From contig NC_043000.1 of the NCBI RefSeq assembly GCF_006345805.1, positions 49,414,001 through 49,478,000 on the forward strand: a stretch of 64,000 nucleotides of DNA. Reading direction: 5' to 3'. A model generated the notes under the pieces. That model searched no databases, was not told the origin of the DNA, and saw nothing but the letters and a program-made list of their open reading frames with translations. A program made the translations under genes and the position numbers. Shown here piece after piece: positions 1 through 52,299 of the stretch. The stretch is from Octopus sinensis (taxonomy: Eukaryota). Each line of letters opens with the position of its first letter. Position 1 is the stretch's first letter.

Positions 1-141
1 TAGCCCCAGGAGATCATCATCTCCAGCTGGCTTTAGGCACACTATCTGTGCCCTTACGGTATTTGCAAAGGGAGGTCATATACCATAAGGGCACAGATAG
101 TGTGCCTAAAGCCAGCTGGAGACGATGATCTCCTGGGGCTA
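1..141. mobile_element. Fold-back palindrome A (56-bp arms; left arm may extend beyond the window edge)
   Basis: 1-56 is the reverse complement of 86-141 with 1 mismatch, around a ~29-nt spacer. Confidence 0.85.
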
Positions 142-252
142 AAAGCTATAGTAACACCCACTCTTTGTGGTTAGCCATATTGAGATGGCTATTATACTTT
201 ACGTTGTCGAGCGGTTACTGTTTACATCTCGTCCAGAGATTTATTATTGCTA

Positions 253-294
<42 letters not shown>

Positions 295-397
295 GAATAG
301 ATAGATAGATAGATAGATAAAGTTGTTCATCACTTTTTCAGTCTGTGGAGAAATGGTTAAAATTTACCGTCTATAATTATACCATATGTTGTATATG

Positions 398-463
<66 letters not shown>

Positions 464-2700
464 AAAAGTAACAAAGTTACTCAAGGGCCAACAAGAGTTT
501 CATGCATTAGTCAAACTAGTGACAAATCAAGGAAGTAGTTTGATAAATGCTTGCACACGATACTCTGAGGCATTGAGTTACTCTGTTACACACAACAAAT
601 TCTTTCAGTTTCCATCTATCATATCTTCTCACAAGGTCTTGTACTAGAGCAGATGGCACTTTCTTAATATATCTTAAATAATTTAAATGCCATGTATAGA
701 ATTCAAATTCGACTGTCAGACAAATTGCTCTTTTCTCTTCCTGAGATAATGAAATAAAGCTCTACTAATATACTTATATCATTTCCATTGAAAATATCTC
801 AGAAAACAAAATTTACTTTCTACATAATCTAAGGAAATCTGTATATGTAATCTAATGTTATCTAAAACAGATGCTACATAGTCACAATATATTTAATGTA
901 TTCCTATAAATATATATATAAAACGTGTGTGTGTGTGTGTAAATATATATAGTCAATCTAAATAAACAAGCAATTCAGATAAATGAATAAAATTAATGGA
1001 GAGCATGAGGACAAGCACAAGGTATGTATTAGCTCTATGCTTGGGGAAAAGAGAGAGTTTGACGTTTTGAGCATAGCTCTTCCTCGGAAAGGAGAAAGGG
1101 AAAAGTCGAAAAAAGGTGATTTCTTTATCACCAACACCGCATGTGTAGTTACATTGCTGAAGTAAGTTTATGTGTGTGTGTGTGTGTATGTGTGTATAGA
1201 TAGACTGATATTTCAACTAGAATATCATTATCATCATTTGGTGTCGAGGTAGATTTTTGTACCAGGTGCTCTTCCTGTCACAAACACTTGCCTGTTTCCA
1301 AGCAAGATAATGTTTCCCATGACCACACATTTTTTTTCTACTGGAGACCAGAAACAAATGACTTTGCATGTATGATTAAAATGTTCGTTTACAGCTTTCA
1401 CATGATTCACAGCAAGGTTACACACAACCACATATACATACAATCATGCATACATATGTACACACACACACACACAAACGATGGGCCTCTTTCAGTCACT
1501 GTCAACTAAATATTTTCACAACACTGTGGTCAGACCAGAGCCATAGAAAACACTGCCCAAGGTACCATACAGTAGGATTGAACATGAGACCACATCATTG
1601 GGAGACATGCTTCTTAATCACACTGGTGAACAAAAATCTAAATACTCCGTTTATGACATTAGATTAACTGGTCATATGATATAAAGCTTGTGAATGGATA
1701 AAGAATTAGAAAATTCTTTCCTGCAGTTAAAATGTGGTAACATAGTTCTTTATAGAACAGCCATGTTATAGTGGCAAAAAAAGTATTACCGTCTAGTATT
1801 GTTCCTAGTTACTGAGTTACTCAGTTACACACAACGAATTCTTTCAGCCATGTTATAGTGTTATTTTAGAACTTTGCTTATTTCAAGATCTACAACTGTC
1901 TGCAGCTTCTCTGTTCATATACTGTAAATAGGGACAATTGACTGCTGTCTCTAGCAGGCAGGTGTCCAGTACCAATGAAGAGTAAAGACTCAGAAACCAT
2001 GATCTACTGGTCTTGCCAAGCTGGTGGGAGTGATTCAGTCCCTTACTCACAATATGCCGAACACAGATTGTGTGTCATTAACCAGCTGGAAAAGACGTTT
2101 TCCCGGGGTTAAAATGTAGTTACATGGTTCTTTATTGAACAGCCATGTTATAGTAGCAAAAATACATTACCGTCTCGAATTCTTACTACTACTCATATCT
2201 CGTTTAGAGATTTTAGAACTAGCTATTTTGCTCATAATTAGAAAATTATTATCTTCAGGGCTTCGTATCAACCAACATCAGGTAATAATGACTTCAAAAT
2301 TTACATATAGTAATATAGCTTAATATTCTATATAGATCAATCATAGTAATGTTGTGATGTGATATTTTCCTAATACTTCAGTTCATTATTTCTTTCTTAA
2401 TGTTTCCAGCAACATTAGTCTTTTAAATGCAAATAACACATTTTAGTTATTTCCTTGCTAAAATGGTTGAGTAGACCAATTGTTATATCTTTAATTCATA
2501 TCAAGTATTGTATAATAATATCAAAACTATGCAAAATATTAATATGTAGGGTTATGAAAGCAGCAGCTGCAAGGAAAACTTTTGAAGTCTTAACTGATCA
2601 AATCTTAAAAGCAAACAGGAATAATATTTCATCCAATTGAAAAAGTGGGGTTTTTTAAATTAAAATTTTACAGATACACATAAGCATATATATATATATA

Positions 2701-2930
2701 TTTCTTTACTACCCACAAGTGGCTAAACACAGAGGGGACAAACAAGGACAGACAAAGGGATTAAGTTGATTACATCGACCCTAGTGCGTAACTGGTACTT
2801 AATTTATCGACCCTGAAAGGATGAAAGGCAAAGTCGACCTCGGCAGAATTTGAACTCGGAACGTAACGACAGACAAAATACAGCTACACATTTCGCCCAA
2901 TGTGCTAACGTTTCTGCCAGCTCGCTGCCT
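2701..2930 (-). mobile_element. SINE family S2 (ggcgagctggcagaaacgttagc... consensus)
   Basis: Highly similar copies at 9481-9710 (-), 9911-10140 (-) and 47449-47677 (+); degenerate copies near 7460-7670, 28323-28752 and 33000-33320; B-box-like gagttcaaat. Confidence 0.85.
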
Positions 2931-3008
2931 TAATATATATATATGTATATATATATATTACAGCAGTATTAAAACCAAGCAGTGTTCCGGCATAAGTGAA
3001 CTTTTGGC

Positions 3009-3379
3009 TAGTTAAAATGTTTGACATATTTCAACTTCTAAAGACAAATTCACTGCAGCTACCATGGAGAAAAAAGATTCTCACTTAAGGTAAAATGATG
3101 TAAAAACACCATACCTGTCCCGTGCTGCTCCCTCTCAGATTCTGTTATGTATTTCTAGTTCTGCAGTCATTATCAATGGGAAATACTGAAGAAAGGCAAC
3201 TCTGGACAGCTGTAACTTTAACTAAAAGACTAGAAATGCATCTGAGAATCAAACAGGGGGCAGCACTGGAGAGATATGGTAGTTCTATACCATTTTACTA
3301 TAAGAGAGAATTTTTTTCTTCATGGTAACTGCTGTGAATTTGCCTTTAGAAGTTGAAATATGTCACAAACTTTCAACTA
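3009..3379. mobile_element. Old fold-back palindrome C (~150-bp arms) with a hammerhead remnant at the apex
   Basis: 3009-3159 is an imperfect reverse complement of 3229-3379 (roughly 75-80% by eye). The spacer contains CTGAAGA...GGACAGCTGTA (3186-3214). Confidence 0.75.
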
Positions 3380-5892
3380 ACCTAAAATTTATATAGACAG
3401 ACAGATAGATAGATATTGCATCAATTTGTTAAAGTAGGTAAATTTTTTTTTTTTTTTTTTTTGTAAATTGATATATGCCAATGCATTTGTATTTATGACG
3501 TTACAGATGGAAAAACAAGCAATGTTGTGCCCTGACTCCAGACCATTTTAACTGAAGCATTGACTGATCACTCTCTAAATTAGAGTCTCTGATAATTTGT
3601 ACTTATGATGACAATGAAAGACTAGACTTTAAGATTCTGAGTTTTATACTCTTAAAGCATTTATTTATTGTATTAATCTAAGACATTTATTGTTCACCTC
3701 TAGATTAACTCTAATTGAGCAGGCATAATTTTAAGTTAGTAAAATTGATATGAGTATTTAATATTAGCCATAGAGATAAAATTTCTGAGTGGGCTATTCA
3801 CTAATAGATCATTATAATTACTGTATTTGTTTCATTGTGTCATAGAACATAACATTAACTGTATTTAACAACACATAAGACATTCTTTTCTATCTTTTAA
3901 TATAGCAAAAAATTGTCCTTTGTCTAATGCAGCGAAATTATGAATGGTCAACAGTGTGTTGTAGACCAGAGTGCTGGATATGCATAAGTGCACATGGCAC
4001 AACAGTTCTTTCTAATAATAAAATACTGAAAACCTGCCAAAACAGTACAGTCTGCTAGCACAAACTTCCAAGAAATTACATACAGTACATGAGACGAGAT
4101 CATATTATCTCATTATACTTCCTTCCTCAGCATACGTGTCCTATACTTGATATGTGTCTTAGATTATTTAAAGACTGTGTTACCTTTACAAAATATTGTT
4201 TTAGTTATCTGGAAGAAAAAAAATTCTCCTAGGAAGATGAAAGTAATGCTTAACTTTCATCCACTTGTCAATTATTTGCAACAAATCGATGACAAATGAA
4301 CAGTAGCAGTGGTACACCATCTTATAGGATGATCGCAGTAACTCAAAACATCTCAGCCAAAAGTATGAGTCTTACATCTTGTATGACAATTTTTTTGACC
4401 AAAATGAACATCTCTACAGTCAATCTGAATGAAGATAAAACTAAAATACAGTACCCATATAGCACTGTTTATATATGATAAAATTATAGTTTTATACTTT
4501 ATTCCACTATACTGTCACAGTATTGTATTTATATGCATAGACTCAAACATTTTCCTCTACAAAGCAACTTTGAAATATCTTTCAATGTTTGTATGAGGAA
4601 ACATAAATTTCTTTGGTTTTTTTTTGTTCCAAAAAATATACTTATAAAATCCAAATACACCTTATATTCCAGCAAATACTGTAACTAAGAGCTTGTGAAA
4701 GCCTGACATCTTTTCCATATATACGATCAGTCACTTAATATTAAATTTAAGGCTAAACAATATTTTTTTTTAGCAACATTCAGTAACTGAAGTTTTGGAA
4801 ACACAAACTTCATAATATTCCACTAAGAAGTAATAATATTGAATTAGAAGAGCAGGTCTTTGATGTGAACCCATCATTGTTAGATAATCAGAGAGGACGT
4901 CTTGTTTTGTATTTTCGGGGGGTGGGTGGGTCAGGATTCTGGTGTAACCCTATAGTGTAGGCTCATGGTGCAGTGGTTTCAATTCCTGGACTAGGCAATG
5001 TCTTGTGTTCTTGAGCAAAACACTTCCTTTCACATTGCTCCAGTCCACTCAGCTGGTAAAACTTAGTCATGCTGCAATAGACCCGTGTTCCATCCAGGGA
5101 GGAATATATACACAAGAGAAACCAGGGAAACTGGCACTATGCTCCTTATAGAGTAATGTAGACTACAAAACCCATCATATATGCACCTTCCCATTTAGAT
5201 AGTTGGCCAATCCCAAAACTAATGTATTGATGGAACCCATACCCTTACAAGCCCTGATTCTGGTCACTTCCCTCATGTCTTTTATCAAATTGTGAATACT
5301 TCTTGCAGAATCCATTCCACTGCGGGTATTTAAACCAAGTCTAAGGATTACGTCCTTCCACCAGCCTCATAGGCTCTGAAAACGGCTTTGAACTAACTGA
5401 GGTGTTTGAGCACAGGACAAAATGATAATATTTGTTCCAGCTCTCTGTCCTTCAAGTTCAAATCCTGCCAAGGTCTTCTTTCCTGTCCATCCTTTCTGGA
5501 TTGATAAAGTAAGATGAAATACCGATCCAGATCAATGTTTGGGTAGAAATGTTGCAGTGTCTTACACAATGCCTTGTGGCAAATTGTTCCTTATCTCTAT
5601 GTTCTTGATTTTGGGGTGCTAGATTTATTCTGTTACCCCCAACCGGTCCTAGAGTTCACTCTGCTGCAAGCTTTCAAGCCCGGTTCATAATTTGAGCATA
5701 CAATTTTTCCTTGCTCCTACCAGTCTTAGGGGCACTGAAAAAAAATAAAGGATCATAGGGTCTACTCTTCAATCTTTGACAAAAATAACACAAAATAAAA
5801 ACGAAAGAAAAAGAAAGATTTGGTGGACTCTACTTTTCTCCCTGTCACTGATTTTCCACAAATAAATAAATAATCATCTAAAACTAATTCGT

Positions 5893-6299: not shown

Positions 6300-6758
6300 T
6301 TTCTTTCCAAAATAAATAATCGATTTAATCAAACCAAGTATATGACGGGAATTTTGTCACTATTGATACCAAAAGGGGGAAAGGTAGCTCGGCATCGAAA
6401 AAGCAATAATAATAATCATAATAAATGTTCAGGATTATTTATAAAATTCATCATCTGAAAGATAAACGATATTTGAAGATGTTCAAGGGAAACAACTATG
6501 GCATACTTCTTTATTTGTTATGTCCCTTGTATATTAATTCCAAATTCCACTAATAAATTTTATCAGGTTATTTAATCAACAAAACATTATCATCCTTTGT
6601 ATTAGTGCTTTAGAATCTTAATTATATTTTTTATATATTAACATAATTTAAGGCTCTGTGAGATATATGTGTACATGTGTTTCTTTTATATAAAGATGTA
6701 CATATATATGTAGAACAATCTTACTTAGAAATGGATGCATGCATTCCGTCATATAAAA

Positions 6759-7143
6759 AATTAATAAATAAAACATATGCATATATACATACATATATGT
6801 ACGTACCTACCTCTACATCTATATATACATGCATATATGGGTACAGGACACCAAAAAAACGTCGAACACAATGAGAAACGAAAACATAAACAAAACCAAG
6901 GAACTGGACATTTTTCATGGCGACTGAAGAAGGGGGATTTTCCTTGTGTTATTTGTCCTGTACTCTATTTTTTCGTTGTTTAAGAAAAATGTCCAGTTCC
7001 TTGATTTTGTGTTTATGTTTTCGTTTCTCATTGTGTTTGACGTTTTTTTGGTGTCCTGTACCCATATATGCATGTATATATACATGTAGAGGTAGGTACA
7101 TACAGATATGTATGTATATATGCATATGTTTTACTTATTAATT
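6759..7143. mobile_element. Fold-back palindrome D (~158-bp arms, 67-nt spacer)
   Basis: 6759-6916 is the reverse complement of 6984-7143 with few mismatches. A non-palindromic copy of spacer plus right arm lies at ~61435-61670. Confidence 0.9.
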
Positions 7144-8012
7144 TATTACATATATATGTATATTTTCCTGTTCTTTCATCAGACTCAAGCAAGCATAGGA
7201 AAGTAGACATTAAGACAATAATGATGATAACGATCAATATAGTCATCTTCAGACTGATCTGAGTTCAAATTCTGCCTAGGTCAACATTGTTTTTCATCCT
7301 ATCAAGGTCAATAAAATAAGTACCAGTTGAGCAGTGGGGTCAATATAATCCAGGCCTTGAACATATAATAGAAAGGATTATTATTATGATTATTATTATA
7401 GTTATTATCATCATCATCATCATCATCATCATCATTATTATTATTATCATTAAGGCTGCAAGCAGGCAGAATCATTAGCATGCTGGGTAAAATGCTTAGC
7501 ACCATTTCAGTTGTCGTTATGTTCTGAGTTCAAATCACACCAAGGTTGACTTTGCCTTTCATCCCATTCAGAGTTGCTAGAATAGGTACCAGTAGAGCAC
7601 TGGGGTCGATGTAACAGACTTACTCCATACTCCAAAATTTCTGGCCTTGGGTCAAAATTTGAAATCCTTATTATTTTTATTATCATTATTACTTCTATTA
7701 TTAGGGTGGTCAAGATGTTGCACTCATGATCTAGCATTTGTAATTTCAGTTCCTAGACCAGGTAGTGCACTGTGTTCTTTGAGGAAGATCACTTTGTTTC
7801 ATGTTGCTCTGTGATCACTTCGACACCTGATGCATGGTACACCGGGCACCTGTTCAGGCAACCTGGATTTGATGGAAAGAGTAGCACAAACATTTGATCA
7901 CTATAAACAAATCATTTGTGCAGCTCATTTGGCAAAAGCCAAACAATCATGCATCATCTTCGACAGGAGAGTCCGTCATTATTATTATTATTATTAATAT
8001 TATTATTATTAT

Positions 8013-8565: not shown

Positions 8566-10616
8566 TTATTATTATTATTCAGGTGGTCAGGGTGTTGCAC
8601 TCGTAATCTAGCAATCATGATTTCAATTCTTAGACCAGGCTGTGCGTTGTGTTCTTTGAGCAAAATCACTTTATCTCGTGTTTCTCTGTGATCACTTCGA
8701 CACCTGTTAGGAGAACATTGATCTGATGGAGAAGTGTGGAGTTAATGTGCAGCACGAACACTTGACCACTATAAATAAATCATTTGTGTAGCTACTTCAG
8801 TAAAAGCTGAACACACCCGTTGTCTTCAATGGAAGAGTCCATCATTATTATTAATTCAAGAACTACATAGGTGTACAACCTTAGCTTTTCATCTCTGTCT
8901 CACACAATATTATAGTCATTTGGTATTGCTACATCAATTGTTAGTACACAATTCTTATTAAAATTCAAGCCAGTTTTATTGCATGCATTCGGGCAGTCTG
9001 TATTGTTGCAATCATTGCTGTCGTAGTTGTATGTTCTTATGGACAGGAATTGAAAATTTAGTTCTCTCTCAACACATCTTTTATTATTCATTTTGCTGTT
9101 AAGTTTCAGCTGTTTTGCATCAACTTCCACCATTCTTTCCATTGCTTCGAAGTGGAATTGTGCCACGCCTTGAGTTTAATACTGATTCCTATTATTACGT
9201 TCTACAAATTTATATTAATAATGCAATTCAATTCAATAAAAATTCCTTTTCAGTACTAGAACATATAGATGTAAGTGTGTGTGTGTGTGTGTGTGCATGT
9301 ATGTAGGTGTGTGTGTGTGTGTGTGCATGTATGTAGGTATGTGTGTATGTATGTGTGTGCATATATGTATATATGTATCTCTGTGTATGTGTATGTAAAT
9401 GCATGTATGTGCATGTGTAAGCATATATGTATCTGTGTATGTGTATGTACACATATATATATGTGTGTGTGTGTGCGTGTATTTCTTTGCTGCCCACAGG
9501 GGCCTAAACATAGAAGGGACAAACAAGGATAGACAAAGGTTTTCAGTCAATTACATCGATCCCAGTGCTTAACTGGTACTTATTTAATTGACCCCAAAAG
9601 GATGAAAGGCAAAGTCGACCATGGCAGAATTTGAACTCAGAACGTAAACCTAGACAAAATACCACTAGGCATTTCACCCAGCGTGCAAACGATTCTGCCA
9701 ACTCACCGCCCTGATATATATATATATTAATATTAATATAGAATATAGTTTATTCAAATTCTTTTGTATAAATTCTATGGATAGTTGCAGACTTCCATAT
9801 GTATGTCCAGTAAAAGAAGTCCCACTGTATGATAACATCTGGTTGCCAATACCAAGAGAGGAGCTTTGGGAAGCAAGCTATAAAATTATAACCCAGATAT
9901 TATATATATATATTTCTTTACTGCCCACAAGGGACTAAACATAGAGGGGACAAACAAGGACAGACAAAGGGATTAAGTCGATTACATCGACCCCAGTGTG
10001 AAACTGGTACTTTATTTATCGACCCCAAAAGGATGAAAAGCAAAGTCGACCTCGGCGGAATTTGAACTCAGAACGTAACGACAGACGAAATACTGCTGAG
10101 CATTTCGCCGGTGCGCTAACATTTCTGCCAGCTCGCCACCTGACTGTGCAGTTAAGAAGTTTGCTTCTCCACCACATGGTTTCAGGTTCAGATCTCTTGC
10201 GTAGTACCTTGAGCATGTGTCATCTTCTGCTATAATGCTGGGGTAATGCTGACCAAAGGCTACTGATTGTATTTGGTTGGTGGAAACTGAAAGAAGCATG
10301 TTGTAATGATGGTATGTGTGTGTACACAAACACAGATGCAAATATATATAAATATACGCAAGCATATACATATATCCTTGTCCACACTCTCTCTCTCTCT
10401 TTCTCTCTTCTGTCTCTCTCCCTTTCTCTCTCTTTAACTAAACCTGTTTCAGAATGCAGGGCACATCTACATGTGACAATTTCACTGTGGCTATTATAAT
10501 ACATACATATCATACATACATACAAAGAAATAATTGAGATTCAGTTGAGTTAGGTACTTAAGTTGAAGCATCAGTCAGTCTGGTTTTATCCGCACAGCTC
10601 AAAGTAAAGTGAATAA

Positions 10617-10773
10617 AATCAAAATAAGCAACAGGCTATCAAGTAGTGATGCATTACAACCGTTTCAAGCCCTGCATTTAAACTGATGTAATGATTGCAT
10701 TGTTTAATTAAATGGAGCTGCTTGAAATGGTCTCACTGCATCACCTTTTGATATCCAGTTGCTTATTTTGATT
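10617..10773. repeat. Imperfect fold-back (~65-bp arms) adjacent to a hammerhead motif
   Basis: aatcaaaataagcaac..tatcaa..tgatgca..accgtttcaagc..catttaa pairs with ttaaatg..gcttgaaatggt..tgcatca..ttgata..gttgcttattttgatt. Confidence 0.75.
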
Positions 10774-10828: not shown

Positions 10829-10911
10829 TTCACTACAGCTGTTTCAGATGTGTTCTTTATTGATGAAAACTAAAGGTACATCATGCAAAACATGCATTTT
10901 CTTCAGGTGAA
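10829..10911 (-). ncRNA. Putative type I hammerhead ribozyme with canonical core and long loop II
   Basis: Minus strand: UUCAC-CUGAAGA-AAAUG-[~44 nt]-CAUCU-GAAAC-AGCU-GUA^GUGAA. Stem I is 5 bp and perfect, stem II is 4/5 bp, helix III is the palindrome ACAGCUGU. Confidence 0.6.
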
Positions 10912-13304: not shown

Positions 13305-13490
13305 GTGCTGGTGCCACATAAAAAGCATGCAATACACTCTGTGAAGTGGTTGGCATTAGGAAGGGCATCCAGCTGTAGAAACCATAATAGAACAGACAGT
13401 GGAGCCTGGTGCAGCCCCAAACCTTACCAGCTCTGGTCAAACTGTCCAAATCATACCAGCATGGAAAACAGATGATAAATGATGAGGATG
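13305..13490 (-). mobile_element. SINE/retroposon family S3 (ttggcgttaggaagggcatccagctgtagaa... ending in (GAT)n)
   Basis: Copies at 17450-17625, 18651-18790, 18830-19030, 24857-25110, 54345-55590, 55665-56015 and 56112-56462. Confidence 0.85.
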
Positions 13491-13511
13491 ATGATTACAT
13501 ATATATATATA

Positions 13512-13960: not shown

Positions 13961-14885
13961 ACATACATAGGTAGATGGCTTAATATAAAGTCAATAACAT
14001 TGTAACATTTCTCATTTCTTTTCCTTTATTATTGCATTCTCCTCATCTGGGAAAAAAAAGTCTATATCTGTATCTTTGTTTCCCCCGAAAGAAAATAACA
14101 AAAATAAGATAGAACGAAATAAAATAAAAACTTAATACATCACCTTTAATAAAGCAAAAGCGACAATTTTTTCCCTATTTGTCTTTCTCCACACACTGAA
14201 AACATTCGCCATTCCATCTCATTCCTCTTTTTTCTTCTCTCCATCCTTCATTCTTTCCTGTCTTTTGTAGCAAATACAAGCAAATAACCCATGTTGAATT
14301 TTTATCCTTGGGCCATAAGTTGTGACTTTGAAAATCAATATTAACAGAGGTTTTCTCATTAAGTATGAATTTGGCAATTTCAACTAGTTGCAGTTGAATC
14401 CTTATGGCGATGTGAAAACCATCTTGAACAGAAGCTTTCTTTTTGCTTGTTTTTGGTTTTCCTTTCTGTTTTTGTTTTGCTTTATTTGTTTTTGTTATTT
14501 TTTTCTTTCCATTTGTTTGATGGGTTATTGCAATGTTTTGCTTGCTTTGGCTGTACATTGCAATTCAGTTCCAGAGATTACATTGTGTATCTATATACAC
14601 ATATGCGTGCACACTCAAACACACATACATATGTACATGCATACATACAGACAGACAGGTATACATATATGTACAAGGAAATGGACTTTGAATGATGATG
14701 ATGGTGATGATACATGCATTTTGTGTGCATGTTTATGTGTGTGTGTGTGTGTATTATATATTACTTGGGTCTTAAAAAATTATCTCTGTCGCAATTCCTA
14801 AATTTTCTCTAAGACACCTTCTGAAGAGAATCTAAGATTCAAAATAAAAGTACTTCTGCAAAAATCTTGTGTGCATGTATGTGTA

Positions 14886-14931
<46 letters not shown>

Positions 14932-15023
14932 AATGTGTGTGGGTGTAAAGAGAGAGAAAACTATCTCAGCAAGTTTCCTGTAACCCATGCCAACATTGAC
15001 AAAGGAGCCATAAAACCAGTGAT

Positions 15024-15062: not shown

Positions 15063-15240
15063 CGCAGGAATGGCTGTGTGATAAGTAGCTTGCTTACTGA
15101 CCACATGGTTCTGGGTTCAGTCCCACTGCATGGCACCTTGTGCAAGTGTCTTCTTCTATAGCCTCAGGCAGACGAAAGCCTTGAGAGTGGATTTGGTAGA
15201 CAGAAGCTAGAAGAAGCCTGTCGTATATATATGTATATAT

Positions 15241-15493: not shown

Positions 15494-16934
15494 GTAAAAA
15501 ATATATATATATATATATATATTGAATATAATTATCAGTGCTTTTATGTCTCTTTTGTCAATGCTAGCATGGGTTATAGGAAACTTGGTGAGACAGTTTT
15601 CTACTTTCAGATGCTCTTTCTGTCATCAACTCTTACTTTTTGCCACATAAAGTGTTTATTCTATTCTCTCTTTAACTTAACAAACTATAAAACAACCAGG
15701 CAGGTTTCAACAGATTATATAAGCATTGACACCACTTAAACATTGTCATTGTTTCATGTTATAAACACACAATGTGAAGGCTCAGATAGGAATAGACAAA
15801 CAGATGTATAGGTACACATGTGCGTGTGTGTGTACATATATGTATGGATGTACACATATGCTAATACATTATTCTCCCGCACTGTCTTTTTCTCTCTTTC
15901 TCTTTCTCTCTTCCCACATCATTGATTCTCTGTATCCATCTCCAAATGAGTGTCTCCTCTCAGTCACCTAATAAATTCACTGTCTGTTTCTTGATCTCTA
16001 TAAATTTTCAGGGCCTGAAAATTAGGACATCGTGTTAAGGAAAAGACAGAATTGCCATCTGCTTTTATACATATGAAATTGAATTTTGTGTTGTTTAATC
16101 TTGAATGGAAGTTGTACATGAAATTCCATGTATTATAAAAACAATGTTAAAAAAATTACGTCTACTTTGAAATAACTGATGATACAAAATATACACAAAT
16201 TCAAATTCAAGATTATATGTATGAGTTTTATTAAACTCATATATTAATATTCTTTGACTATATCTTACATGCTCTAATATCTGCAGGTATATACATACAC
16301 ACATTCATATATACACATTTGTGTGTGTGTGTGTGTGAGAGAGAGAGATAGAGAGAGTGTAGATATATGCAACTTCATGTTATACCATATGGGTGTTTAC
16401 TCGAAAATAGCTTTAGCTTTAAATTAAGTTTTTCTGTATTTATTGAGATCTTATTTTGACTGAAGTAGCAAACTCATTAAAAAATATTATTTTTATTAAA
16501 TATTACAAACGAAGACTTGATAAATTACATACTAAGGTATTAGTTTCTGTTCACTGTTGACTTTTGCACAGTCCCAAATGGTTTTCCCTTTTAGTGGTGA
16601 AGTTTCCAGTACTGAAATATTGCTACCGATTCTAATGTCTCTTTTGTTTCATTATTAAAAAAGAAAAACATTTTTATTTGTTTTCATTTACAATTTTGCT
16701 GCTAAATTTTATGACTCTTCAGCATATGACTTTTTGAACTTTATAGAAGTTTTTATAAAATGGAATTCCCGCATGCCATATACAAATTACATTGGTCAAA
16801 TTATATTTTCTCAAAGAAAAAAATATTGACAAAATATAGAGCAGCTCTCATCCAGTTGTTAAAATGTCAGTTCTTAGTCTCAAGTAATTTACACAAATTT
16901 ATGTGGTGAGAATTATTTTAAAAGAATGAATCTA

Positions 16935-17343
16935 TAGGCACAGGAGTGGCTGTGTGGTAAGTAGCTTGCTAAACAACCACATGGTTCCAGGTGCAGTCCC
17001 ACTGTGTGGCATCTTGGGCAAGTGTCTTCTGCTATAGCCCCGGGCCGACCAATGCCTTGTGAATGGATTTGGTAGACGGAAACTGATAGAAGCCTGTCGT
17101 ATATATGTATATATATATATGTATGTGTGTGTGTTTGTGTGTCTGTGTTTGTCCCCCTAGCATTGCTTGACAACCGATGCTGGTGTGCTTACGTCCCCGT
17201 CACTTAGCGGTTCGGCAAAAGAGACTGATAGAATAAGTACTGGGCTTACAAAGAATAAGTCCTGGGGTCGATTTGCTTGACTAAAGGCGGTGCTCCAGCA
17301 TGGCCGCAGTCAAATGACTGAAACAAGTAAAAGAGTAAAAGAG
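16935..17343 (+). mobile_element. SINE family S1 copy (young subfamily)
   Basis: Full head to tail; shares diagnostic variants with 30859-31263. Confidence 0.9.
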
Positions 17344-24820: not shown

Positions 24821-24858
<38 letters not shown>

Positions 24859-30858: not shown

Positions 30859-31263
30859 TCTTTTACTTGTTTCAGTCATTTGACTGTGGCCATGCTGGAG
30901 CACCGCCTTTAGTCAAGCAAATCGACCCCGGGACTTATTCTTTGTAAGCCCAGTACTTATTCTATTGGTCTCTTTTGCCGAACTGCTAAGTGATGGTGAC
31001 GTAAACACACCAGCATCGGTTGTCAAGCAATGCTAGGGGGACAAACACAGACACACAAACATTTACACACACATACATATACATATATATACATATATAC
31101 GACAGGCTTCTTTCAGTTTCCGTCTACTAAATCCACTCACAAGGCATTGGTTGGCCCGGGGCTATAGCAGAAGACACTTGCCCAAGATGCCACACAGTGA
31201 GACTGAACCTGGAACCATGTGGTTGGTAAGCAAGCTACTTACCACACAGCCACTCCTGCGCCT
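30859..31263 (-). mobile_element. SINE family S1 copy (young subfamily)
   Basis: Full-length, about 95% identical by eye to 16935-17343 in inverted orientation. Confidence 0.9.
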
Positions 31264-31280
31264 ATATATATATATATATA

Positions 31281-31941
31281 CAAGATAAGAAAATGGAGCA
31301 ATACATCTAAATCAAATATCAATTTCCAGATAATACTCAATCACATACTTTATTAAACCACCACATAAGAGACTGTAGGGTTAAATATAAAAAGCAGAAC
31401 AAATCAGTGTACATAAAGGAATGTACATAAAAAAGTGTACATAAAAGAGTAATGTTGTATAATAAGTAGAATATATATAAAAGAGAATATAGATATAAGT
31501 AAATATAAATATAAGTATAGATTACATCTTACAGCTGTTTCGGCCATGTAGATAAGTATGTCTCATTTTACCAATATTAGCCCTTTATGGTTGGTCAATA
31601 TATAGATATAAATGAGACATTTACAAAAATATCATAAGGGCTAATATTGGTAAAATGAGACATACTTATCTACATGGCCGAAACAGCTCTAAGATGTTAT
31701 CTATATTTATATTTATATTTACTTATATTTATATTCTCTTTTATATATATTCTACTTATTATACAACATTACTCTTTTATGTACACCTTTTTTATGTACA
31801 CTCCTTTATGTACACTGATTTGTTCTGCTTTTTATATTTAACCCTACAGTCTCTTATGTAGTGGTTTAATAAAGTATGTGATTGAGTATTATCTGGTAAT
31901 TGATATTTGATTTAGATGTATTTCTCCATTTTCTTATCTTG
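31281..31941. mobile_element. Fold-back palindrome B (~309-bp arms, 43-nt spacer), pLTR-like
   Basis: 31281-31589 is the reverse complement of 31633-31941 with roughly 10 differences; TA on both flanks; the arms contain GCCGAAACAGCT(G/C)TAAGATG and a distal AATAAA. Confidence 0.9.
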
Positions 31942-37857: not shown

Positions 37858-38265
37858 TCTTTTACTTGTTTCAGTCATTTGACTGCAGCCATGCTGGAGC
37901 ACCGCCTTTAATCGAGCAACTCGACCCCGGGACTTATTCTTTTGTAAGCCCAGTACTTATTCTATCAGTCTCTTTTGCCGAACCGCTAAGTAACGGGGAC
38001 ATAAACACACCAGCATCGGTTGTCAAGCAATGCTAGGGGGACAAACACAGACACACACAAACACACACACACACACATACACATATATATATATATATAC
38101 ATATATACAACGGGCTTCTTTCAGTTTCCACCTCCCAAATCCACTCACAAGGCTTTGGTCGGCCCGAGGCTATAGTAGAAGACACTTGCCCAAGGTGCCA
38201 CGCAGTGGGACTGAACCCGGGACCATGTGGTTGATAAACAAGCTACTTACAACACAGCCACTCCT
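37858..38265 (-). mobile_element. SINE family S1 copy
   Basis: Full length, close to consensus. Confidence 0.9.
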
Positions 38266-43332: not shown

Positions 43333-43410
43333 CATACATATATATGTGCATGTATATATTTATATAAGAATAAATGTTTTATATATAAAGAAATATATAT
43401 ATAAAATAAT

Positions 43411-43637
43411 ATGTTACAAATACTCAATAGTCAAGATAAAACTCTGAGTTTCAGATGCTGAAGTGGAAATCCACAACACCATCTCTTCGGTTATCTGGCC
43501 ATATGAAAAAACGCTTTCTTTTTTTTTTTCATAGCGTTTTTTCATATGGCCAGATAACCGAAGAGATGGTGTTGTGGATTTCCACTTCGGCGTCTGAAAC
43601 TCAGAGTTTTATCTTGACTATTGAGTATTTGTAACAT
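43411..43637. mobile_element. Young fold-back palindrome E (105-bp arms, 17-nt spacer); the + arm continues to ~43720
   Basis: 43411-43515 is the reverse complement of 43533-43637 with only 2 mismatches, both C/T at CpG. Confidence 0.92.
43552..43614 (+). ncRNA. Putative type I hammerhead ribozyme, CCGA core variant (mirror copy 43434-43496 on the - strand)
   Basis: AGAUAA-CCGAAGA-GAUG-[22 nt]-C(G/A)UC-U-GAAAC-UCAGA-GUU^UUAUCU. Stem I is 6 bp and perfect, stem II is 4 bp, helix III is a near-palindrome (ACUC-A-GAGU). Confidence 0.55.
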
Positions 43638-45654
43638 TATTTTATAGATAAATTTCCTCTATTTACATAATATTGAGGTCTTTTTCTTTCTTTTGTTATC
43701 TTACCGTTTTTACCAATATATATAAATATATATATATATATGTATCATGGGATTCCTGTACTCAAGCTCTATCAGAAAAGTTAAATTCAAATATAGTCTT
43801 CTTTTGAAATAAGAATAATATTTGGAGTCAGTCAATTTCAGGCTTTAATCTTCTTTTTTACCTCAGTACTTTTTTTTCTGTAGAGGCACAATGGCCAAGT
43901 GGTTAGGGTAGCAGACTTGCAGTTTTGATTCCCAGACTAGGTGTTTTGTGTGTTTAATGAGCGAAAACACCTAAAGCTCCACAAGGCTCTGGCAGGGGGT
44001 GGTGGCGACCCCTGTTGTACTCTTTCACCCCAACTTTCTCTCACTCTTTCTTCCTATTTCTTGAGTAACACTGCAATGGACTGGCATCCCGTCCAGCTGG
44101 TGGGAACACATATGTCACAGAAACCGGGAAACCAGGCCCATGAGCCTGGCTAGGCTTGAAAAGGGCACATAAATAAATAAAATTATTTTTTTTCTACTCA
44201 ATATTTTTGCATATAACTAACATGGATAGATTCCTGTCATCGAGGTCTATCATATAAGCTTAAGTGAAATACAGATTTTTTAAAAAAAATATATAGATGT
44301 CCGGCATTATTCTCCTGTTTGTGACCTCACATATTTGACTCAGACTTTTTTTCTACAGAACCAATTTTCAAATTTTTTAGCTCTAAATGTAGCTGATGAT
44401 GTGATTAATTTAAAAATGTAAACATCATCTAATTTGGTTAAAAACTGAGTAGTGACAAAGCCTAGTACTGGTTATGAATGAGTAAATGTTGACCTTAAGA
44501 GTATTATTCACACACCACTGTTTTCTGAAAAGATTAGCCCTATGACACTTGTTCTGATGAGTTCTATCATATGAGATAGAAAAACGGTTTTAGGTTTTCA
44601 ATCTGATTTTAGGTGTTACCACTGTTTTACGGCACATTTGATCCCAATAGTTATTTATTTAAAATTTTCTTTTGATATAATAAGCATCATCAGATTCTTC
44701 ATGTGGAGGTCTATCAGAAAAGTTGAATTTAAATTTTCAAATTTTGTAACTGAAAATGTAGCTTAGGATGTGACCTATCTCAAAATGTCAACGTCACCTA
44801 ATTTGGTTAAAAACTGAGTTAGTGACAAAACCTAGAAGTGGTCACAAGTGAGTAAATGTTGACCTTAAGAATATTATTCACACACTACAGTGTGTGAATC
44901 ATACATACATATGTATGTACGTATGTATGTACATACACATGTACAAGCATTCATACATTTGTAAAATGCATACATACATACATACAAAAATACATACATA
45001 CATATGTACACACATATGTGCATACATACATATGTGCATATATATGCGTGTACATATGTGCGTACATAAATGCATATGTACGTACATACACATGCACACA
45101 TACATACACACACATACATGCAAACACACACACACAAGCACACCTATATAATTTGCCTACTGTTAAAAAGAATTTTCACAGAATAAGAATTATTTATGCT
45201 ATGGATTCTATACAAAAGATTCCGATTTGACAATAAATATCACTTAATATGCCTCTTCATTAGCATTCTATCAAAATAGGGGGAGTTTCGAATCCAATGA
45301 AACTAGTGATTGTTTGCATCAAGAAAAATCAATTAACATAAATTTCTGAAGATTTGTAAAGTTTATTGGCTTTAGCCTTTCATCTCCAATTGAGAAGTCA
45401 GTTTTAAAATGAAGTGGGCAAATTTATTTGTTGAAGGGAAGGTTGGATGTGTAAAAGAAATGTGTAGGAATGTGAGGAGAAGTCAGAAATGTTAGGTAAA
45501 CAAAAAGAGGATCAAATAACTAACTGTACAATAAAATAGATATACTTATTTCTTATGCAATTACAAAAGAAATGGGATTAAAGTGACAGGTTAGAGTATT
45601 GTATGCTCAATATCAACAATAGAGTATTTTTGTATGTATGTATGTATGTGTGTG

Positions 45655-46213
45655 TGTGTGTGAGAGGCATTATTCTGTTTTATTTCAAGATTTCTTGCAA
45701 ATAGAAAAAAAAAAAAAACAGTTACTGATCTAGATCTAAGGCTCCTTCATTGGTATTTCAACAACATCAGCAGGGTATCTTTGCTTGCTTGTGTATATAT
45801 GGACAGTATTTGGAGTCAGTGCATGTGCAGATTTGTATGTTTTATGTATGTATTCTCATGCATATAGTTGCATATCTTGACATGCTCATATATATTTAAA
45901 TGATAAACATCGGGAAAGTTTTGTATGTATGTATGTATGTATGTATGTATGTATGTATGTATGTATGTATGTATGTATGTGTATGTATGTATGTGTGTGT
46001 GTGTGTGTGTGGTGTGTGTGTGTGTGGTGTGTGTGTGTGTGTATGCATGCAGATTTGTATGTTTTATGTATGTATTCTCATGCATATAGTTGCATATCTT
46101 GACATGCTCATATATATTTAAATGATAAACATCGGGAAAGTTTTGTATGTATGTATGTATGTATGTATGTATGTATGTATGTATGTATGTGTGTGTGTGT
46201 TGTGTGTGTGTGT

Positions 46214-46247
<34 letters not shown>

Positions 46248-46590
46248 CATGCATGCAGATTTGTATGTTTTAGGTATGTATTCTCATGCATATAGTTGCA
46301 TATCTTGACATGCTCATATATATTTAAATGATAAACATCGGGAAAGTTTTGTATGTATGTATGTATGTATGTATGTATGCACGCACGTGTGTGTGTGTGT
46401 GAGAGGCATTATTCTGTTTTATTTCAAGATTTCTTGCAAATAGAAAAAAAAAAAAAAAAGTTACTGATCTAGATCTAAGGCTCCTTCATTGGTATTTCAA
46501 CAACATCAGCAGGGTATCTTTGCTTGCTTGTGTATATATGGACAGTATTTGGAGTCAGTGCATGTGCAGATTTGTATGTTTTGTTTTATG
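45655..46590. repeat. Complex recent tandem duplication: ~200-bp block repeated at 45655 and 46395, enclosing three ~200-bp units with (TATG)n/(TG)n
   Basis: Near-identical gagaggcattattctg...gcagatttgtatgtttt twice; gcagatttgtatg...catcgggaaagttttg three times (~45827, 46028, 46254). Confidence 0.9.
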
Positions 46591-46710: not shown

Positions 46711-46714
46711 CTTT

Positions 46715-46914: not shown

Positions 46915-46947
<33 letters not shown>

Positions 46948-47698: not shown

Positions 47699-47745
<47 letters not shown>

Positions 47746-47752
47746 AAGAGAT

Positions 47753-47807
<55 letters not shown>

Positions 47808-48985
47808 CTATGCATATATACAATTCTTGGATTGTAAAACAGAACTATTGTTTAAAGCCCCTCACTAAAAAGTAATTGCTAAGAATCTGTTCTTAGCAAT
47901 TTGATGCATCTTTTTTTTTTATCTAAGAGGTTTAAGTAAGGATGTTTCAAAAGAAAAGGCATTGTAGGAGATACAAACAGTGCAAAGCAAAAAAAAAAAC
48001 AAAAACATAAAAAAAGACAAAACACAAAAAAAGACATGAATAGGGAATTATTTATTTATTTATTTATTTATTTAATGTTTTTGAGTCTGGCTGTTTCCAG
48101 TGGAAATTATTAGCTTCAATCTTAAAACAGGTACATAAAAAGAATAACAACAATACAAAAAAAAAAAAATCTGCCCCTCACCCCACCCCCACTACCCCCA
48201 TCCACCACCCACCAAAAACAAATAACATTAAAACAACCGATGATCAAACAGCTCTTTGGAAGTTCGATGGAAATGTGTTTGCGTGAGTGCATGCATTTGC
48301 AAGTGAGTGAATGAGTGAGTGTGTATGTGTGTGCATGTATGTGTATTTATGTGTGTGTTGGGTGGATAAGGCTGATTATTGCGCCTGACTGGATTTATGA
48401 GGTTTTTTTTTGTTTGTTTGTTTGTTTGTTGTTTTTTTTATTCTTCTCATCTATTTGTATGATGAGATACACAGCAAGATTACTACAGGTGCATGTGTAC
48501 ACCAAACAAGAGAGACAGGCAGCGGGAAGGAAGGAAGGAAGGAAAGAAGGAAGAAAGGAAGGAATGGTACACTACTGACTATGTGATGTCTGGTGATACG
48601 AAATGAAATCTCTTTGCTCAAATGGTACAACAAATAAACAAACATCCAAAAAAAAAAAAAAAGATAGAAAATGCAAAATAACAGCAATATTCCCAATATA
48701 TATTGATATGGAGTTTCTTAGTGAAGAGTGGTTGTGCTACTGAGATTTTCCCTGTTTGATACTGTCAAAGCGAGTGTGCTATTGTTAGTAGTAGTAGTAG
48801 TAGTAGTTGTGTCTTATAGCAATGAAGACATACAAACCTACATGTGTATATATGCACGTACATATATACACATGCATTTATATATATGTATATATATATA
48901 TATCAACATGTGATCTCTTGAGCACCACCAGCAAAAAAAATTTTTTTCCTCTGTCTTCCCTTCTCGGGATCTTTCCTTCTCCTTT

Positions 48986-49020
48986 GTTTCCGACGAAGAG
49001 CTCCGCTCGAAACGTTAAAC
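48986..49020 (+). ncRNA. Putative minimal (dimer-type) type I hammerhead ribozyme, CCGA core variant, in a pLTR-like fragment (~48950-49120)
   Basis: GUUU-CCGACGA-A-GAGC-UCC-GCUC-GAAA-CG-UU^AAAC. Stem I is 4 bp, stem II is 4 bp with a G-C closing pair, helix III is the loopless palindrome ACGU. Confidence 0.6.
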
Positions 49021-49115
49021 CCTCCTTCCCTTCTTTCCTGAGCATCAAATAATACTTTAATTGTTCCACATCCTCGCGTTGCTGTGTTTTTTTCTGTGTT
49101 TTCTTGTTTGGATTA

Positions 49116-49150
<35 letters not shown>

Positions 49151-49397
49151 GTGCACTTTTAAAGCCTAGTCAGGTTCATGGGCCCGGTTTCCCAGTTTCT
49201 ATGGCGTATGTGTTCCCCAGCTGGATGGGACACCAGTCCATCGCAGCGTTACTCATTTTTGCCAGCTGAGTGGACTGGAGCAACGTGAAATGAAGTGTTT
49301 TGCTCAAGAACACAACATCTCGCCCAGTCCAGCTATCAAAACCACAATCGTACGATCATGATGCTGACACCGTAACCACTAAGCCATGCGCCTCCAC

Positions 49398-49430
<33 letters not shown>

Positions 49431-50470
49431 ATATATATATATATAATATATATATATATGTATGTATGTATACACACATGTATGCACATACATGCATAGC
49501 AATAAATACTGATACACACACACACACACACACACACAGAAATATGTATATGTTTGTATGTTTGTCTTTCTTCATGATTTATTGAACATACGACCTTATG
49601 GAGGAGGTGTTTGGGGGGCTCTACCACCCACCCGATCCCCATCCTAGGAATAATAGGTGAAGAAGATGAATTCATGGATAAATTTATTCAAGAGTTTTCT
49701 TTTGCAGAATTCAAGACTGCCACTAACAAAATGACAAAAATCTTTAGTTTAAGTCAAGCCAGGGTTTAAGGTAATCTAGAATTGTTGGTGTAAGCACAGA
49801 TGTGTATGTGTATGTGTGTGTGTGTAAATTCCAAATGTGTTTCTGATTGTATGTTTATATGCAGCACAGGAGCCTCAAAGGAAGAATATCTGTGATGCAT
49901 TACAGATTTTCACTGTACCACTAATCAATTGTATTCAGAGAATATGAATCAATTTTCACTTTGTTCTACTTTAGAAAACCCACAGCATTTCAGGACTTTT
50001 ATATGCAAGTTTTTTGTTATGCAACCAATGCTCCTATGATAATAGATACAAATGAAAATTATAGCCTGGATATAGAAGCCGTAAATCTCTCATTAGTTCC
50101 CTATAGATGTTCTCTTTTCAAGAATATAACTGATACTAGAAAGTCAATCTTAATTTATGATGATTTCTACTGCTGTCTGGCATATCTATGGGAAGCTATA
50201 ACAGGGCTGAGGTAGCTAATTTCATCAGGCTGTCTTGGATACTTTAAGGAATGTACATACCCTCAGGGTACAGGCATGGTGGTCAGACAATCTCAAGCTA
50301 AATTAATTGCCATGCCATAGAGAAATTCAGGAAGAATCTGATAAGTGACCTTCAGTGATTTCAATCTAACTATTATATTGCTATTGCCAACCCGAAGGTT
50401 GACTTCATATCCTCTGAGACCTAAGCAAAGTAAGTACAGCCCCTACAGAAAGCCCAGTAAGGTGACTGTT

Positions 50471-50860
50471 TACACTCATAGACACTGCAACCACCACCAA
50501 CTCAACTGTAATTAGAAACCTAGTCACGAGCATTGATAGAAGAATCTATGACAGGATCACACCTCACTATAATGAGGTATTAGAAAGGAGTGCATTTATC
50601 AAAAAGATGTGTTATAATACTATTCCACACATACAAAAACAGCCATACTAACAATCCAACATACCTCCATCATCAGTTGCCCCACAGATATCATTATGGT
50701 TTCGACACTTGGGCAGTACCATTCAATCTGGTGGTGTCAACAGTGCTAAATAAGTATTGTTTTGGTACAAACATATCAAAGAAACCACAACTTTCAAACA
50801 CATTTACCCTATATACAACATTATCAGTAAATAAATTCAATTAGTAAATCTATAACTAAC
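50471..50860 (+). pseudogene. Penelope-like retroelement ORF remnant (RT thumb/linker region), copy 1
   Basis: YTHRHCNH..STVIRNLVTSIDRRIYDRITPHYNEVLERSAFIKKMCY, then II-WF..PFNLVVST (frameshifted). Resembles the PLE pattern SNHPP.VI.NL..SI.RRIS...AP.YN.AL..SGF...RNIIWFNPPF. Confidence 0.6.
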
Positions 50861-51081
50861 TCCTAAACACATAACTAAATAGCAACCAATCCTTTAAGTC
50901 ATACAAAAAAATTTTCCCTACCGTTTTCTATCGTATAATATAAAAGCGAAAGCTTAATAACCACATTCATTTAATCTAAATATAGGCAGGATTAAATACT
51001 AACTTTATCAGTAAGTTATTATAATATGCTATATATAGAGGAACCCATCCCCCACTTCTGAACCCAAAGAGTGTCAGAAAG

Positions 51082-51700
51082 AGAAAAATAGTCTAGTTGA
51101 ATCCTCAATGCAACTTGAGAATTTCCAATAACATAGCTTGGAGCTACTTAATGCTAATTAGAAAGCATTTCCCAAGAACCCAGAGATTATATAAATGCTT
51201 CAGTCTCCATAATGTCATGGTCAGCTGCTCATTTTAGATAACATCACTTCAAGTATTGCACACACCTACGCAATCACCAACCCACATTCCTACTTCTAAC
51301 CATCAAAATCCTACCAGCTGCCACCTGAGACAATCCTGCCTCTCAAAGACTGTTGTCTATAGAACTCACCTTACGCTGCCTGATGTCATCACAAGACACT
51401 ACACAGGCATGACAGTTGATAACTTTAAGAAAATGTACACACAGTACATGCACTCTTTCAAGTGCAGGGACAGGGAAAACTTCACCTTCTGTTATGCTTC
51501 ATCTGCAGACTTTGTGACTATCGAAATGACTTCCCCAACATCAAATGGAGTACTTTTAACATGGCCCCCTCTTCACTCATGTGGAGCTTTCAATTGCCAA
51601 CTCTCTCCCATGATAAACTATACATACTCCACCAACCTGTAGTATACATTCATTATATGCATCTCTGATGGCATTTTATTGATGCCATCAGAAATACACA
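51082..51700 (+). pseudogene. Penelope-like retroelement C-terminus with GIY-YIG endonuclease, copy 2
   Basis: RKIV*LNPQCNLRISNNIAWSYLMLIRKHFPRTQRLYKCFSLHNVMVS; then SCHLRQSCLSKTVVYRTHLTLPDVITRHYTGMTVDNFKKMYTQYMHSFK (VVY...YTG = GIY-YIG, ORF 51256-51642); then FPNIKWS..APS...DKLYIL in the adjacent frame. Confidence 0.8.
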
Positions 51701-52299
51701 CTATTAATGAACTTCAAGCCTCTGGCCACAGGCAACCCAGACATACCTCCTTAGCTGACAGACCCACAAGGGCAGGGTATTTAATAGCTGCTACTCATAA
51801 AGTCTATAGCCTACTTATGTTGGCCTTGATACTTCAACTGTAACCCAGTATCATCAAAATGGTTATCCCTAAAAAATACTGCTTCTACTAATGTGTTCAA
51901 ACACCACAGAACAATGACTCAGCTACTGGTTCCTGCCAACATCTTATCCCACAATATGAGGTACCCAATACAAGGAACTGATTTTGCTGAACATACAATA
52001 CCATTGTTTTCTATTATTATAGTGCTGTTATTATTGTGCCAATTCCTTTTCCAAAACATGTGGACTAAAAAATAAAGAAAGTAATTGGTGTCGTTTTAAT
52101 AATATAAATAATCTAGGATGATCACTGGAGTCTTGAACACCTGGAAACCACTTTGAATTCCTTTCAAACCTTTCACTCTACCTTTCAGGGTCTGATGAGA
52201 TCCTGAAATACCTCTCAAATACTTTGATTATATGAGAGGTAAGTGAGATTGGCTGGCAGTTCACTGCAAGGTACTTGTTTCCCTTTTTGAAAACTGGGA

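Follow-up and report, generated by a model that had tools for sequence, protein, structure and literature searches.

Long fold-backs, hammerhead ribozyme motifs and a Penelope-like element (PLE) lie close together in the 64,000-nt stretch of the Octopus sinensis genome analysed here (NC_043000.1, positions 49,414,001 to 49,478,000; hereafter the window, whose own numbering is used throughout), which raises the question of whether the ribozymes produced the fold-backs. The original prediction for this DNA held that six fold-backs, labelled FB1 to FB6 below, are hammerhead-bearing parasites derived from the pLTR, the partial tandem of PLEs, that self-cleavage sets the ends of their RNAs, that their cDNA snaps back at the ribozyme, and that they pass through a retrozyme-like circular RNA. 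We find all six fold-backs at or close to the coordinates given for them, and hammerheads in one of the six, FB6. We consider it probable that the window contains a PLE remnant, solo hammerhead units set in microsatellites, and two head-to-head pairs, FB6 and FB3, which arose by PLE-type integration with the hammerhead carried along as a passenger.

FB6 carries a PLE-type hammerhead in each arm

We searched the window with a descriptor written from the published description of the minimal PLE hammerhead (PMC4209133). Its strict form found exactly three sites, one in each arm of FB6 (43552-43614, +; 43434-43496, -) and one elsewhere (48986-49020, +), and any hit at all was obtained in 1 of 500 dinucleotide-shuffled windows. 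With one mismatch allowed, five hits were found against 0.77 expected, adding a site at 1057-1090 (-). A covariance model was trained in addition on five hammerheads, all taken from intact PLE contigs of other organisms; the window copies were left out because a MAFFT alignment that included them misaligned the GAAA box. The model matches both FB6 arms at 16.6-16.7 bits (E about 0.05-0.06). Two other designs were given up: the first descriptors, with no bulge or with a 5' bulge only, missed FB6, and a two-box search with up to two mismatches performed no better than noise, its 99 cores comparing with 81 +/- 10 in shuffles.

The right-arm hammerhead reads AGAUAA CCGAAGA (31-nt helix II region including an unpaired U) GAAA CUCAGAG U U/UUAUCU, the slash marking the predicted cleavage site. 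Its centroid fold has three helices, of which helix I is 6 bp long, helix II is extended and helix III is a 9-nt palindrome; H17 is U. In both arms C3, G5, A6, G8, A9 and G12-A13-A14 are all in order, and the two motifs are 55 nt apart. The proposed link between fold-backs and hammerheads thus holds for FB6, with a complete PLE-type minimal hammerhead per arm, and fails for the other five. The right-arm hammerhead is encoded on the + strand and the left-arm one on the - strand, so the two FB6 units have their 5' ends towards the centre.

The position of the ribozyme within the arms speaks against a role in making the fold-back. Around the predicted cleavage site each arm covers 76 nt on the upstream and 45 nt on the downstream side, and 85 nt separate the site from the centre of FB6. 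Because the arms cover both sides of the site, cleavage did not define the ends of the copied RNA, as had been supposed. Nor is the turn-around point at the ribozyme in this window, as the core starts 25 nt inside the arm. Moreover, with the two ribozymes on opposite strands there is no same-strand dimer, which these minimal hammerheads are thought to need, and in an FB6 transcript the sense ribozyme would be base-paired to its antisense copy, so that self-cleavage of the fold-back RNA would be unlikely. An Rfam match to mir-9 at 43475-43573, just over the gathering score and present on both FB6 strands, was rejected as an artefact of the long near-perfect hairpin; it marks no microRNA gene.

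FB3 and an Argonauta fold-back have an inverted, truncated copy

FB3 is a pair of units without hammerheads, one full and one inverted (Table 1). The first base of the full arm is also that of a solo copy of the unit (61436-61663) and lies within 2 nt of the point where the inverted arm stops; the left arm lacks the first ~75-88 nt of the unit. The unit is thus mobile, its solo copy being 54 kb from FB3.

We compared the window with a 20.7-kb locus of Argonauta hians (L013), in which the covariance model gave five hits with E <= 0.06, among them hits with E = 7.6e-6 and 0.002. A solo unit at 8990-9117 of this locus ends at a TA repeat. A fold-back at 20058-20266, I9, has a full hammerhead unit on the right and an inverted left arm that is truncated inside the hammerhead core, and both outer ends of I9 coincide with the 3' end of the solo unit. 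The two Argonauta units examined (9045-9088 and 15077-15118) adjoin TA repeats. An adjacent, inverted, 5'-truncated copy is therefore seen in both FB3 and I9, FB6 is consistent with it, and PLE insertions often have such a copy (PMC8557442). As one arm of I9 ends inside the hammerhead core, the idea of a turn at the ribozyme survives as a genome-wide question.

Hammerhead-bearing fold-backs recur in octopods, yet they are a minority among fold-backs. The Argonauta locus has at least four other non-microsatellite fold-backs, all lacking a hammerhead, and a high density of fold-backs seems typical of octopods in general. Three of the four hammerhead-less fold-backs at 17808-18444, 16569-17109, 9165-9369 and 14794-15000 start with TAT... 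and finish with ...ATA (the one at 9165-9369 does not), and two of these three adjoin TA repeats on one flank. A large ENA contig (L014) was set aside as unrelated to the window.

FB6 (43640-43653) and the Argonauta unit (L013 9100-9117) have a 5' TTTTCAT motif and the helix III sequence GAAACUC(A/U)GAGU in common, and their 3' ends are alike, TATTTTA(G)ATAAATTT. From these motifs, the two unit families may be related and may have a common 3' recognition end.

A decayed Penelope-like element lies in the same window

The Penelope GIY-YIG open reading frame (ORF) reported earlier was recovered at 51256-51642 (+) and has 19 relatives by HMMER. Residues 532-708 of one homolog, P0008 (759 aa), align to 51088-51591 of the window (BLASTP E = 8e-18; also by tblastn), and a protein profile matches the endonuclease region with E = 8.8e-19. 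Upstream, a profile of 23 full-length homologs weakly matches the reverse-transcriptase (RT) region at profile positions 312-393, 399-424 and 441-474, in order. Among 22 full-length homologs checked, RWK/R is present in 18, DKT in 19, Y/FRDD in all 22 and CxCx5C in 12, and most have a C-terminal GIY...YIG motif. The window copy has lost the N-terminal RT, and its linker is degenerate (SCHLRQSC). Together these matches point to one decayed Hydra-clade PLE at roughly 50.2-51.7 kb on the + strand. A word-indexed protein search and Pfam, both applied to the GIY-YIG ORF, had found nothing.

The hammerhead remnant assigned to 51755-51775, just downstream of the ORF, was not borne out, since neither the descriptor nor the covariance model matches a hammerhead there. 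This segment is 113 nt past the stop codon; the hammerhead of intact relatives is found 82-148 nt past the stop. A comparison of 48.6-49.4 kb with 51.6-52.3 kb revealed no direct repeat that would form a partial tandem around the PLE ORF.

Two hammerhead units are set in microsatellites

The third strict-descriptor site belongs to a separate element, unit A. Its hammerhead, already recognised as near-complete, reads GUUU CCGACGA A GAGC-UCC-GCUC GAAAC GU U/AAAC (slash, predicted cleavage site) and is a good example of the Penelope-type minimal form. It combines two 4-bp helices with a palindromic ACGU helix III, an unpaired A before helix II, the G10.1-C11.1 pair and U at H17; C3, G5, A6, G8, A9 and G12-A13-A14 are all in order.

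Unit B, whose hammerhead relic was absent from the original prediction, has 65% identity to unit A over 184 nt, rising to 83% in the hammerhead. Of the six differences between the two hammerheads, four affect N7, loop 2 and H17, which are free positions, and the relic departs from the conserved core at G12, which is A. Units A and B, like the Argonauta units, adjoin TA/CA repeats, and the size and layout of A and B correspond to the 3' untranslated end of a PLE. What stands of the proposed short pLTR-derived parasites is accordingly this: separate hammerhead units that resemble the untranslated end of a PLE and sit in TA microsatellites. Alignments among the fold-back units, and of these with units A and B, detected no similarity except that of A with B.

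Between unit A and the PLE remnant, at 49133-49397, lies a dispersed repeat; the window has at least eight copies of it, among them those at 4973-5146 and 44062-44186.

The hammerheads share an unusual core position

All four window hammerheads have C at core position 4 (CCGANGA), a position where U is normally conserved. The sites in the window are 43558-43564, 48990-48996 and 1081-1087 (-), and outside it the same base occurs in L003 (525-531) and L011 (2484-2490), as well as in the Argonauta locus (L013 9052-9058 and 20196-20202). The C4 core is thus found in four independent lineages, two of which are intact PLEs with full helices (contigs L003/L004 and L011). The Argonauta copies also read CCGUNGA, with U6, and one reads CAGAAGA, with A4. 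Recurrence of C4 in otherwise intact elements raises the question of whether these motifs cleave; for motifs of this class, either the changes would be tolerated or the motif would be kept for a non-catalytic reason.

Five fold-backs lack hammerheads

When each entire fold-back is aligned with its reverse complement, identity lies between 73% (FB2) and 93% (FB5); the best ungapped arm pairs are 89-97% complementary. Such a range of identities argues for real genomic features of differing ages and against assembly artefacts, and arm identities of 73-97% mark the fold-backs as old.

In FB1 to FB5 the descriptor found no hammerhead, even with one mismatch allowed, and the covariance-model matches there are noise. 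The core motifs said to lie within ~20 nt of five apexes fare no better, with an exact heptamer within 20 nt of one of the six centres (P about 0.15). Measured from the centre of each fold-back, the closest exact CYGANGA is at 5 nt (FB2), 24 nt (FB3) or 37 nt (FB6), and FB1, FB4 and FB5 have none within 200 nt. Within 40 nt, a threshold picked post hoc, three of the six centres have a CYGANGA against 0.31 expected (nominal P = 0.003); the window contains 43 exact CYGANGA heptamers against 28.7 +/- 5.5 in shuffles. The heptamers of FB2 (a lone CTGAAGA) and FB3 are followed by no GAAA box and are therefore not hammerheads, so that among the centre-proximal heptamers that of FB6 alone belongs to one. 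A further hammerhead proposed at 10829-10911 has no GAAA box either, and its covariance score of 9.0 bits (E = 6.7) is at noise level.

FB1, FB2, FB4 and FB5, whose ends are TA, showed no similarity to any other unit in the alignments and no clear target-site duplication; each may be a pair of some other short retroposon or a miniature inverted-repeat transposable element (MITE) of DNA-transposon type. The arms of FB5 hold UAUCU-ACAUGGCC-GAAA-CAGCUG-U-A-AGAUG (31660-31700, +, plus its mirror in the left arm), in which helix I, the GAAA box and a palindromic helix III are present and the CUGANGA box and helix II are absent. This motif may be due to chance, or may be a hammerhead with an internal deletion.

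Table 1 Positions of the fold-backs, hammerheads, units and PLE remnants in the window
Feature	Position	Strand	Description
FB6 fold-back	43395-43653		hammerhead in either arm, on opposite strands
FB6 right arm	43533-43653	+	~130-nt hammerhead unit; 5' end central, AT-rich 3' end outward
FB6 left arm	43395-43515	-	inverted copy of the right-arm unit, 93% complementary to the right arm
FB6 junction/loop	43516-43532		17 nt, T-rich, TTCTTTTTTTTTTTCAT
FB6 right-arm hammerhead	43552-43614	+	minimal type I; predicted cleavage after 43608
FB6 left-arm hammerhead	43434-43496	-	helix II pairing kept through a U-G to U-A change
FB3 fold-back	6751-7151		pair of ~230-nt units without hammerhead
FB3 right part	6919-7151	+	full ~230-nt retroposon-like unit, AT-rich (TTTATTAA)n-type tail, no hammerhead
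FB3 left arm	6751-6916	-	inverted, 5'-truncated copy; 2 filler bases to the full copy
Solo copy of FB3 unit	61434-61670	+	94-96% identical; sets the 5' end of the unit
Linker and GIY-YIG endonuclease remnant	51064-51642	+	Hydra-clade PLE (by motifs); stops/frameshifts upstream of a 128-aa ORF
Reverse-transcriptase remnants	50182-50627	+	weak, collinear, frame-shifted
Unit A	48903-49125	+	~220-nt hammerhead unit, TA microsatellite on both sides; aligns with unit B
Unit A hammerhead	48986-49020	+	minimal; predicted cleavage after 49016
Unit B	935-1160	-	diverged second copy of unit A; CA/TA microsatellite at edges
Unit B hammerhead relic	1057-1090	-	G12 changed to A
FB1 fold-back	1-141	no strand	no hammerhead; cut by the window start
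FB2 fold-back	3009-3379	no strand	73% identity to its own reverse complement; no GAAA box
FB4 fold-back	10617-10773	no strand	no hammerhead
FB5 fold-back	31278-31944		667 bp; arm pairs 97% complementary; (TA)8 at left flank; no hammerhead

Origin of the inverted pairs

We propose that one PLE-type integration event would yield each of the inverted pairs FB6 and FB3. The GIY-YIG endonuclease would cut both DNA strands, and both 3' ends would then prime reverse transcription of the unit RNA; alternatively, the cDNA would switch template at the 5' end of the RNA. By either route the 3' ends of the copies would point outward and their 5' ends would be joined in the centre through a short filler. 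The hammerhead would ride inside the unit, neither causing the turn nor setting the ends. The polarity of the units, the asymmetry between full and truncated arms, the TA-repeat context and the homology to Hydra-clade PLEs are all observed directly. In vitro, a purified PLE protein cuts the two DNA strands and extends them, and PLE insertion does not need hammerhead cleavage, an uncleaved RNA being inserted (PMC11167929). Pairs of minimal hammerheads on opposite strands, 100-700 bp apart, have been seen previously (PMC4209133). Two hammerhead-bearing inverted pairs, one per species, have the arrangement that priming of reverse transcription from both cut strands would give.

Several points weigh against this proposal. 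Only two hammerhead-bearing fold-backs were seen overall, one per species. The covariance-model E-values of FB6 are modest and calibrated only roughly, and the RT remnants are weak, each being insignificant singly. The Hydra-clade assignment of the PLE is drawn from motifs in homologs rather than from a phylogeny, and no sequence similarity was detected between any fold-back unit and the PLE copy of the window. With C in place of the normally conserved U4, and U6 in Argonauta, catalysis is doubtful, and the hammerhead motifs could be relics. Finally, there are no target-site duplications that would prove a single insertion event: at the exact fold-back boundaries we found none of 4 bp or more outside low-complexity DNA, TA flanks being ambiguous.

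The ambiguity of TA bears on the alternative that the fold-backs are MITEs with long terminal inverted repeats, for example of Tc1/mariner type with a TA duplication, FB6 having captured a PLE fragment. FB1, FB2 and FB5 are indeed edged by TA...TA, and both MITEs and Tc1/mariner elements have been annotated in Octopus vulgaris (PMC13282606). However, TA is self-complementary and is also a PLE target, so that such ends are compatible with a TA-repeat target as well as with a Tc1/mariner-type duplication and do not discriminate, and no longer duplication was found. Moreover, the start of the solo FB3 unit coincides exactly with the end of the inverted arm, as would not be expected of a randomly truncated MITE, and the outer ends of Argonauta I9 match the 3' end of a solo retro-type unit. 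MITEs and fold-back DNA transposons are likewise short, non-coding and hairpin-forming with TA ends, but the window elements have no duplication beyond TA, and FB3 and FB6 have a retro-type asymmetry and polarity. We therefore regard a MITE origin as unlikely.

Inverted duplication at the DNA level, in which replication would switch template or a hairpin would be repaired at palindromic TA microsatellites, with no retroelement machinery taking part, would account for the TA-rich repeats that adjoin the fold-backs, for the lack of target-site duplications and for the short repeats of neighbouring arm sequence noticed by eye in the FB5 and FB6 loops. Yet the arms stop at natural unit ends and not in unique flanking DNA, and the FB3 unit is mobile, with its solo copy far from the fold-back; this route appears very improbable.

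The full scheme of self-cleaved ends, snap-back at the ribozyme and circular RNA can point to the hammerheads of FB6, to the I9 arm that stops inside the core and to the post hoc excess of CYGANGA near the centres, but it is highly improbable given five fold-backs that lack a hammerhead even at one mismatch, FB6 arms that run across a cleavage site remote from the centre, the absence of the tandem copies from which a retrozyme-type multimer would come, and the insertion of uncleaved RNA by PLEs in vitro. There is no support here for the broader idea that ribozymes generally drive the fold-backs in this genome.

The head-to-head layout agrees with the signature known for Penelope insertions. 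The window hammerheads resemble the minimal type I hammerheads of PLEs (Cervera and de la Pena 2014, PMC4209133) in their short helix I, the unpaired nucleotide by helix II, G10.1-C11.1 and a palindromic helix III suited to dimers, and the systems are also alike in their location in the PLE untranslated repeat, their many solo copies and their opposite-strand pairs. They differ in having C4 instead of U4, as do two intact marine-metagenome PLE lineages, and in the closer spacing of the FB6 pair (55 nt versus 100-700 bp). Craig et al. 2021 (PMC8557442) describe Hydra-clade PLEs as having DKT, RWK and CxCx5C motifs, as bearing hammerheads and as targeting (TA)n. The window shares with them the C-terminal GIY-YIG, the RWK/R, DKT and CxCx5C of the homologs, insertion into (TA)n, short elements with hammerheads and inverted 5'-truncated copies; unlike them, the window copy is a decayed remnant in which no pLTR was found and whose clade is given by motifs, not by a tree. 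The PLE remnant and the units provide concrete cephalopod examples of Hydra-clade PLEs with short hammerhead derivatives.

Animal non-LTR retrozymes (bioRxiv 10.64898/2026.07.22.740005) are also short, non-coding hammerhead units that are related to PLE ends and presumably mobilised by PLEs. They are defined, however, by tandem arrays and circular RNA, whereas the units of the window are solo or inverted, with no tandem head-to-tail copies. The retrozyme label given to them earlier therefore fails on its defining tandem arrangement, and that of PLE derivative fits.

A broader conjecture, to which we give little credence, is that octopod genomes contain a large class of PLE-dependent elements of 130-230 nt, whose hammerheads have a non-canonical core (C4, at times U6). 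The motif would then act as an RT pause or recognition structure and not as a ribozyme, and two-strand priming would generate head-to-head hairpins in TA microsatellites. If this were true, the RNA-editing or small-RNA systems of cephalopods, which are unusually active, would be supplied with long double-stranded RNAs from the hairpin elements.

Rfam models miss the PLE-type hammerheads

Rfam hammerhead models, run over the whole window and over sub-regions at the gathering threshold and at E <= 10, gave no match. As a positive control we scanned intact PLE contigs, and no hammerhead was reported there either, though hammerheads are present by eye and by descriptor; the Rfam negative for the window was therefore discarded as uninformative. 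The hammerhead models of Rfam 15 miss every PLE-type minimal hammerhead studied here, those of intact elements included (window; L001, L003, L005, L006). Because the models are blind to the whole class, genome annotations can be expected to under-call PLE-type hammerheads, and a standard annotation of this window would report zero ribozymes. Less seems to have been described so far of the C4 core, of the U6 and A4 variants and of the inability of Rfam models to recognise this class. Two metagenome scans, one for the FB6 hammerhead and one for an abundant short interspersed nuclear element (SINE) of the window, returned nothing.

Other repeats of the window

The window has a G+C content of 31-41% and is dense in TA/CA microsatellites and short retroposons. 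The abundant SINE has a 3' end of the form ...GGCCACAGTCAAATGACTGAAACAAGTAAAAG followed by a (AGTAAAAG)n-type tail, which occurs in 16 copies in the 64 kb (at 11693, 15442, 17283, 19202, 19670, 27945, 29819, 30843, 37856, 39152, 46710, 47090, 57487, 58001, 59326 and 62375). A second conserved SINE segment is found at 38110-38220 and at 12 other sites, and occurs in Argonauta hians at 78-92% identity; the same range applies to the most abundant SINE of the window, which an Argonauta locus also contains. A second SINE of ~200 nt with a (TGA)n tail is present in 8 copies, including a tail-to-tail pair and a local duplication of 97% identity (13310-13495, 17451-17612, 18653-19032, 24855-25053, 55399-55836 and 56054-56283). 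Its 33-nt head is repeated four more times, at 54514, 55193, 55275 and 55337 (62-82-nt spacing), upstream of 55399.

Three further inverted repeats were considered as transposon inverted repeats and rejected. The 3' end of the abundant SINE, with its (GTAAAAGA)n tail, delimits those at 29819-30910 and 57484-58060, and that at 55399-55836 is the tail-to-tail pair of the ~200-nt SINE with its (TGA)n tail. All three are due to chance or are tail-to-tail pairs of the two abundant SINEs.

Outside these families, a fragment of a long interspersed nuclear element (LINE) reverse transcriptase at 52370-52834 is 57% identical to an Argonauta hians protein, its only close relative with a name; this match and the SINE found in Argonauta point to an octopod cephalopod as the most likely source of the DNA. 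An ORF at 45816-46250 (-) weakly matches the TRIP13 N-terminal domain (E = 1.8e-4), and identical 44-nt strings occur ~740 bp apart, at 45745-45773 and 46484-46512 (-), which suggests a possible local duplication around this ORF.

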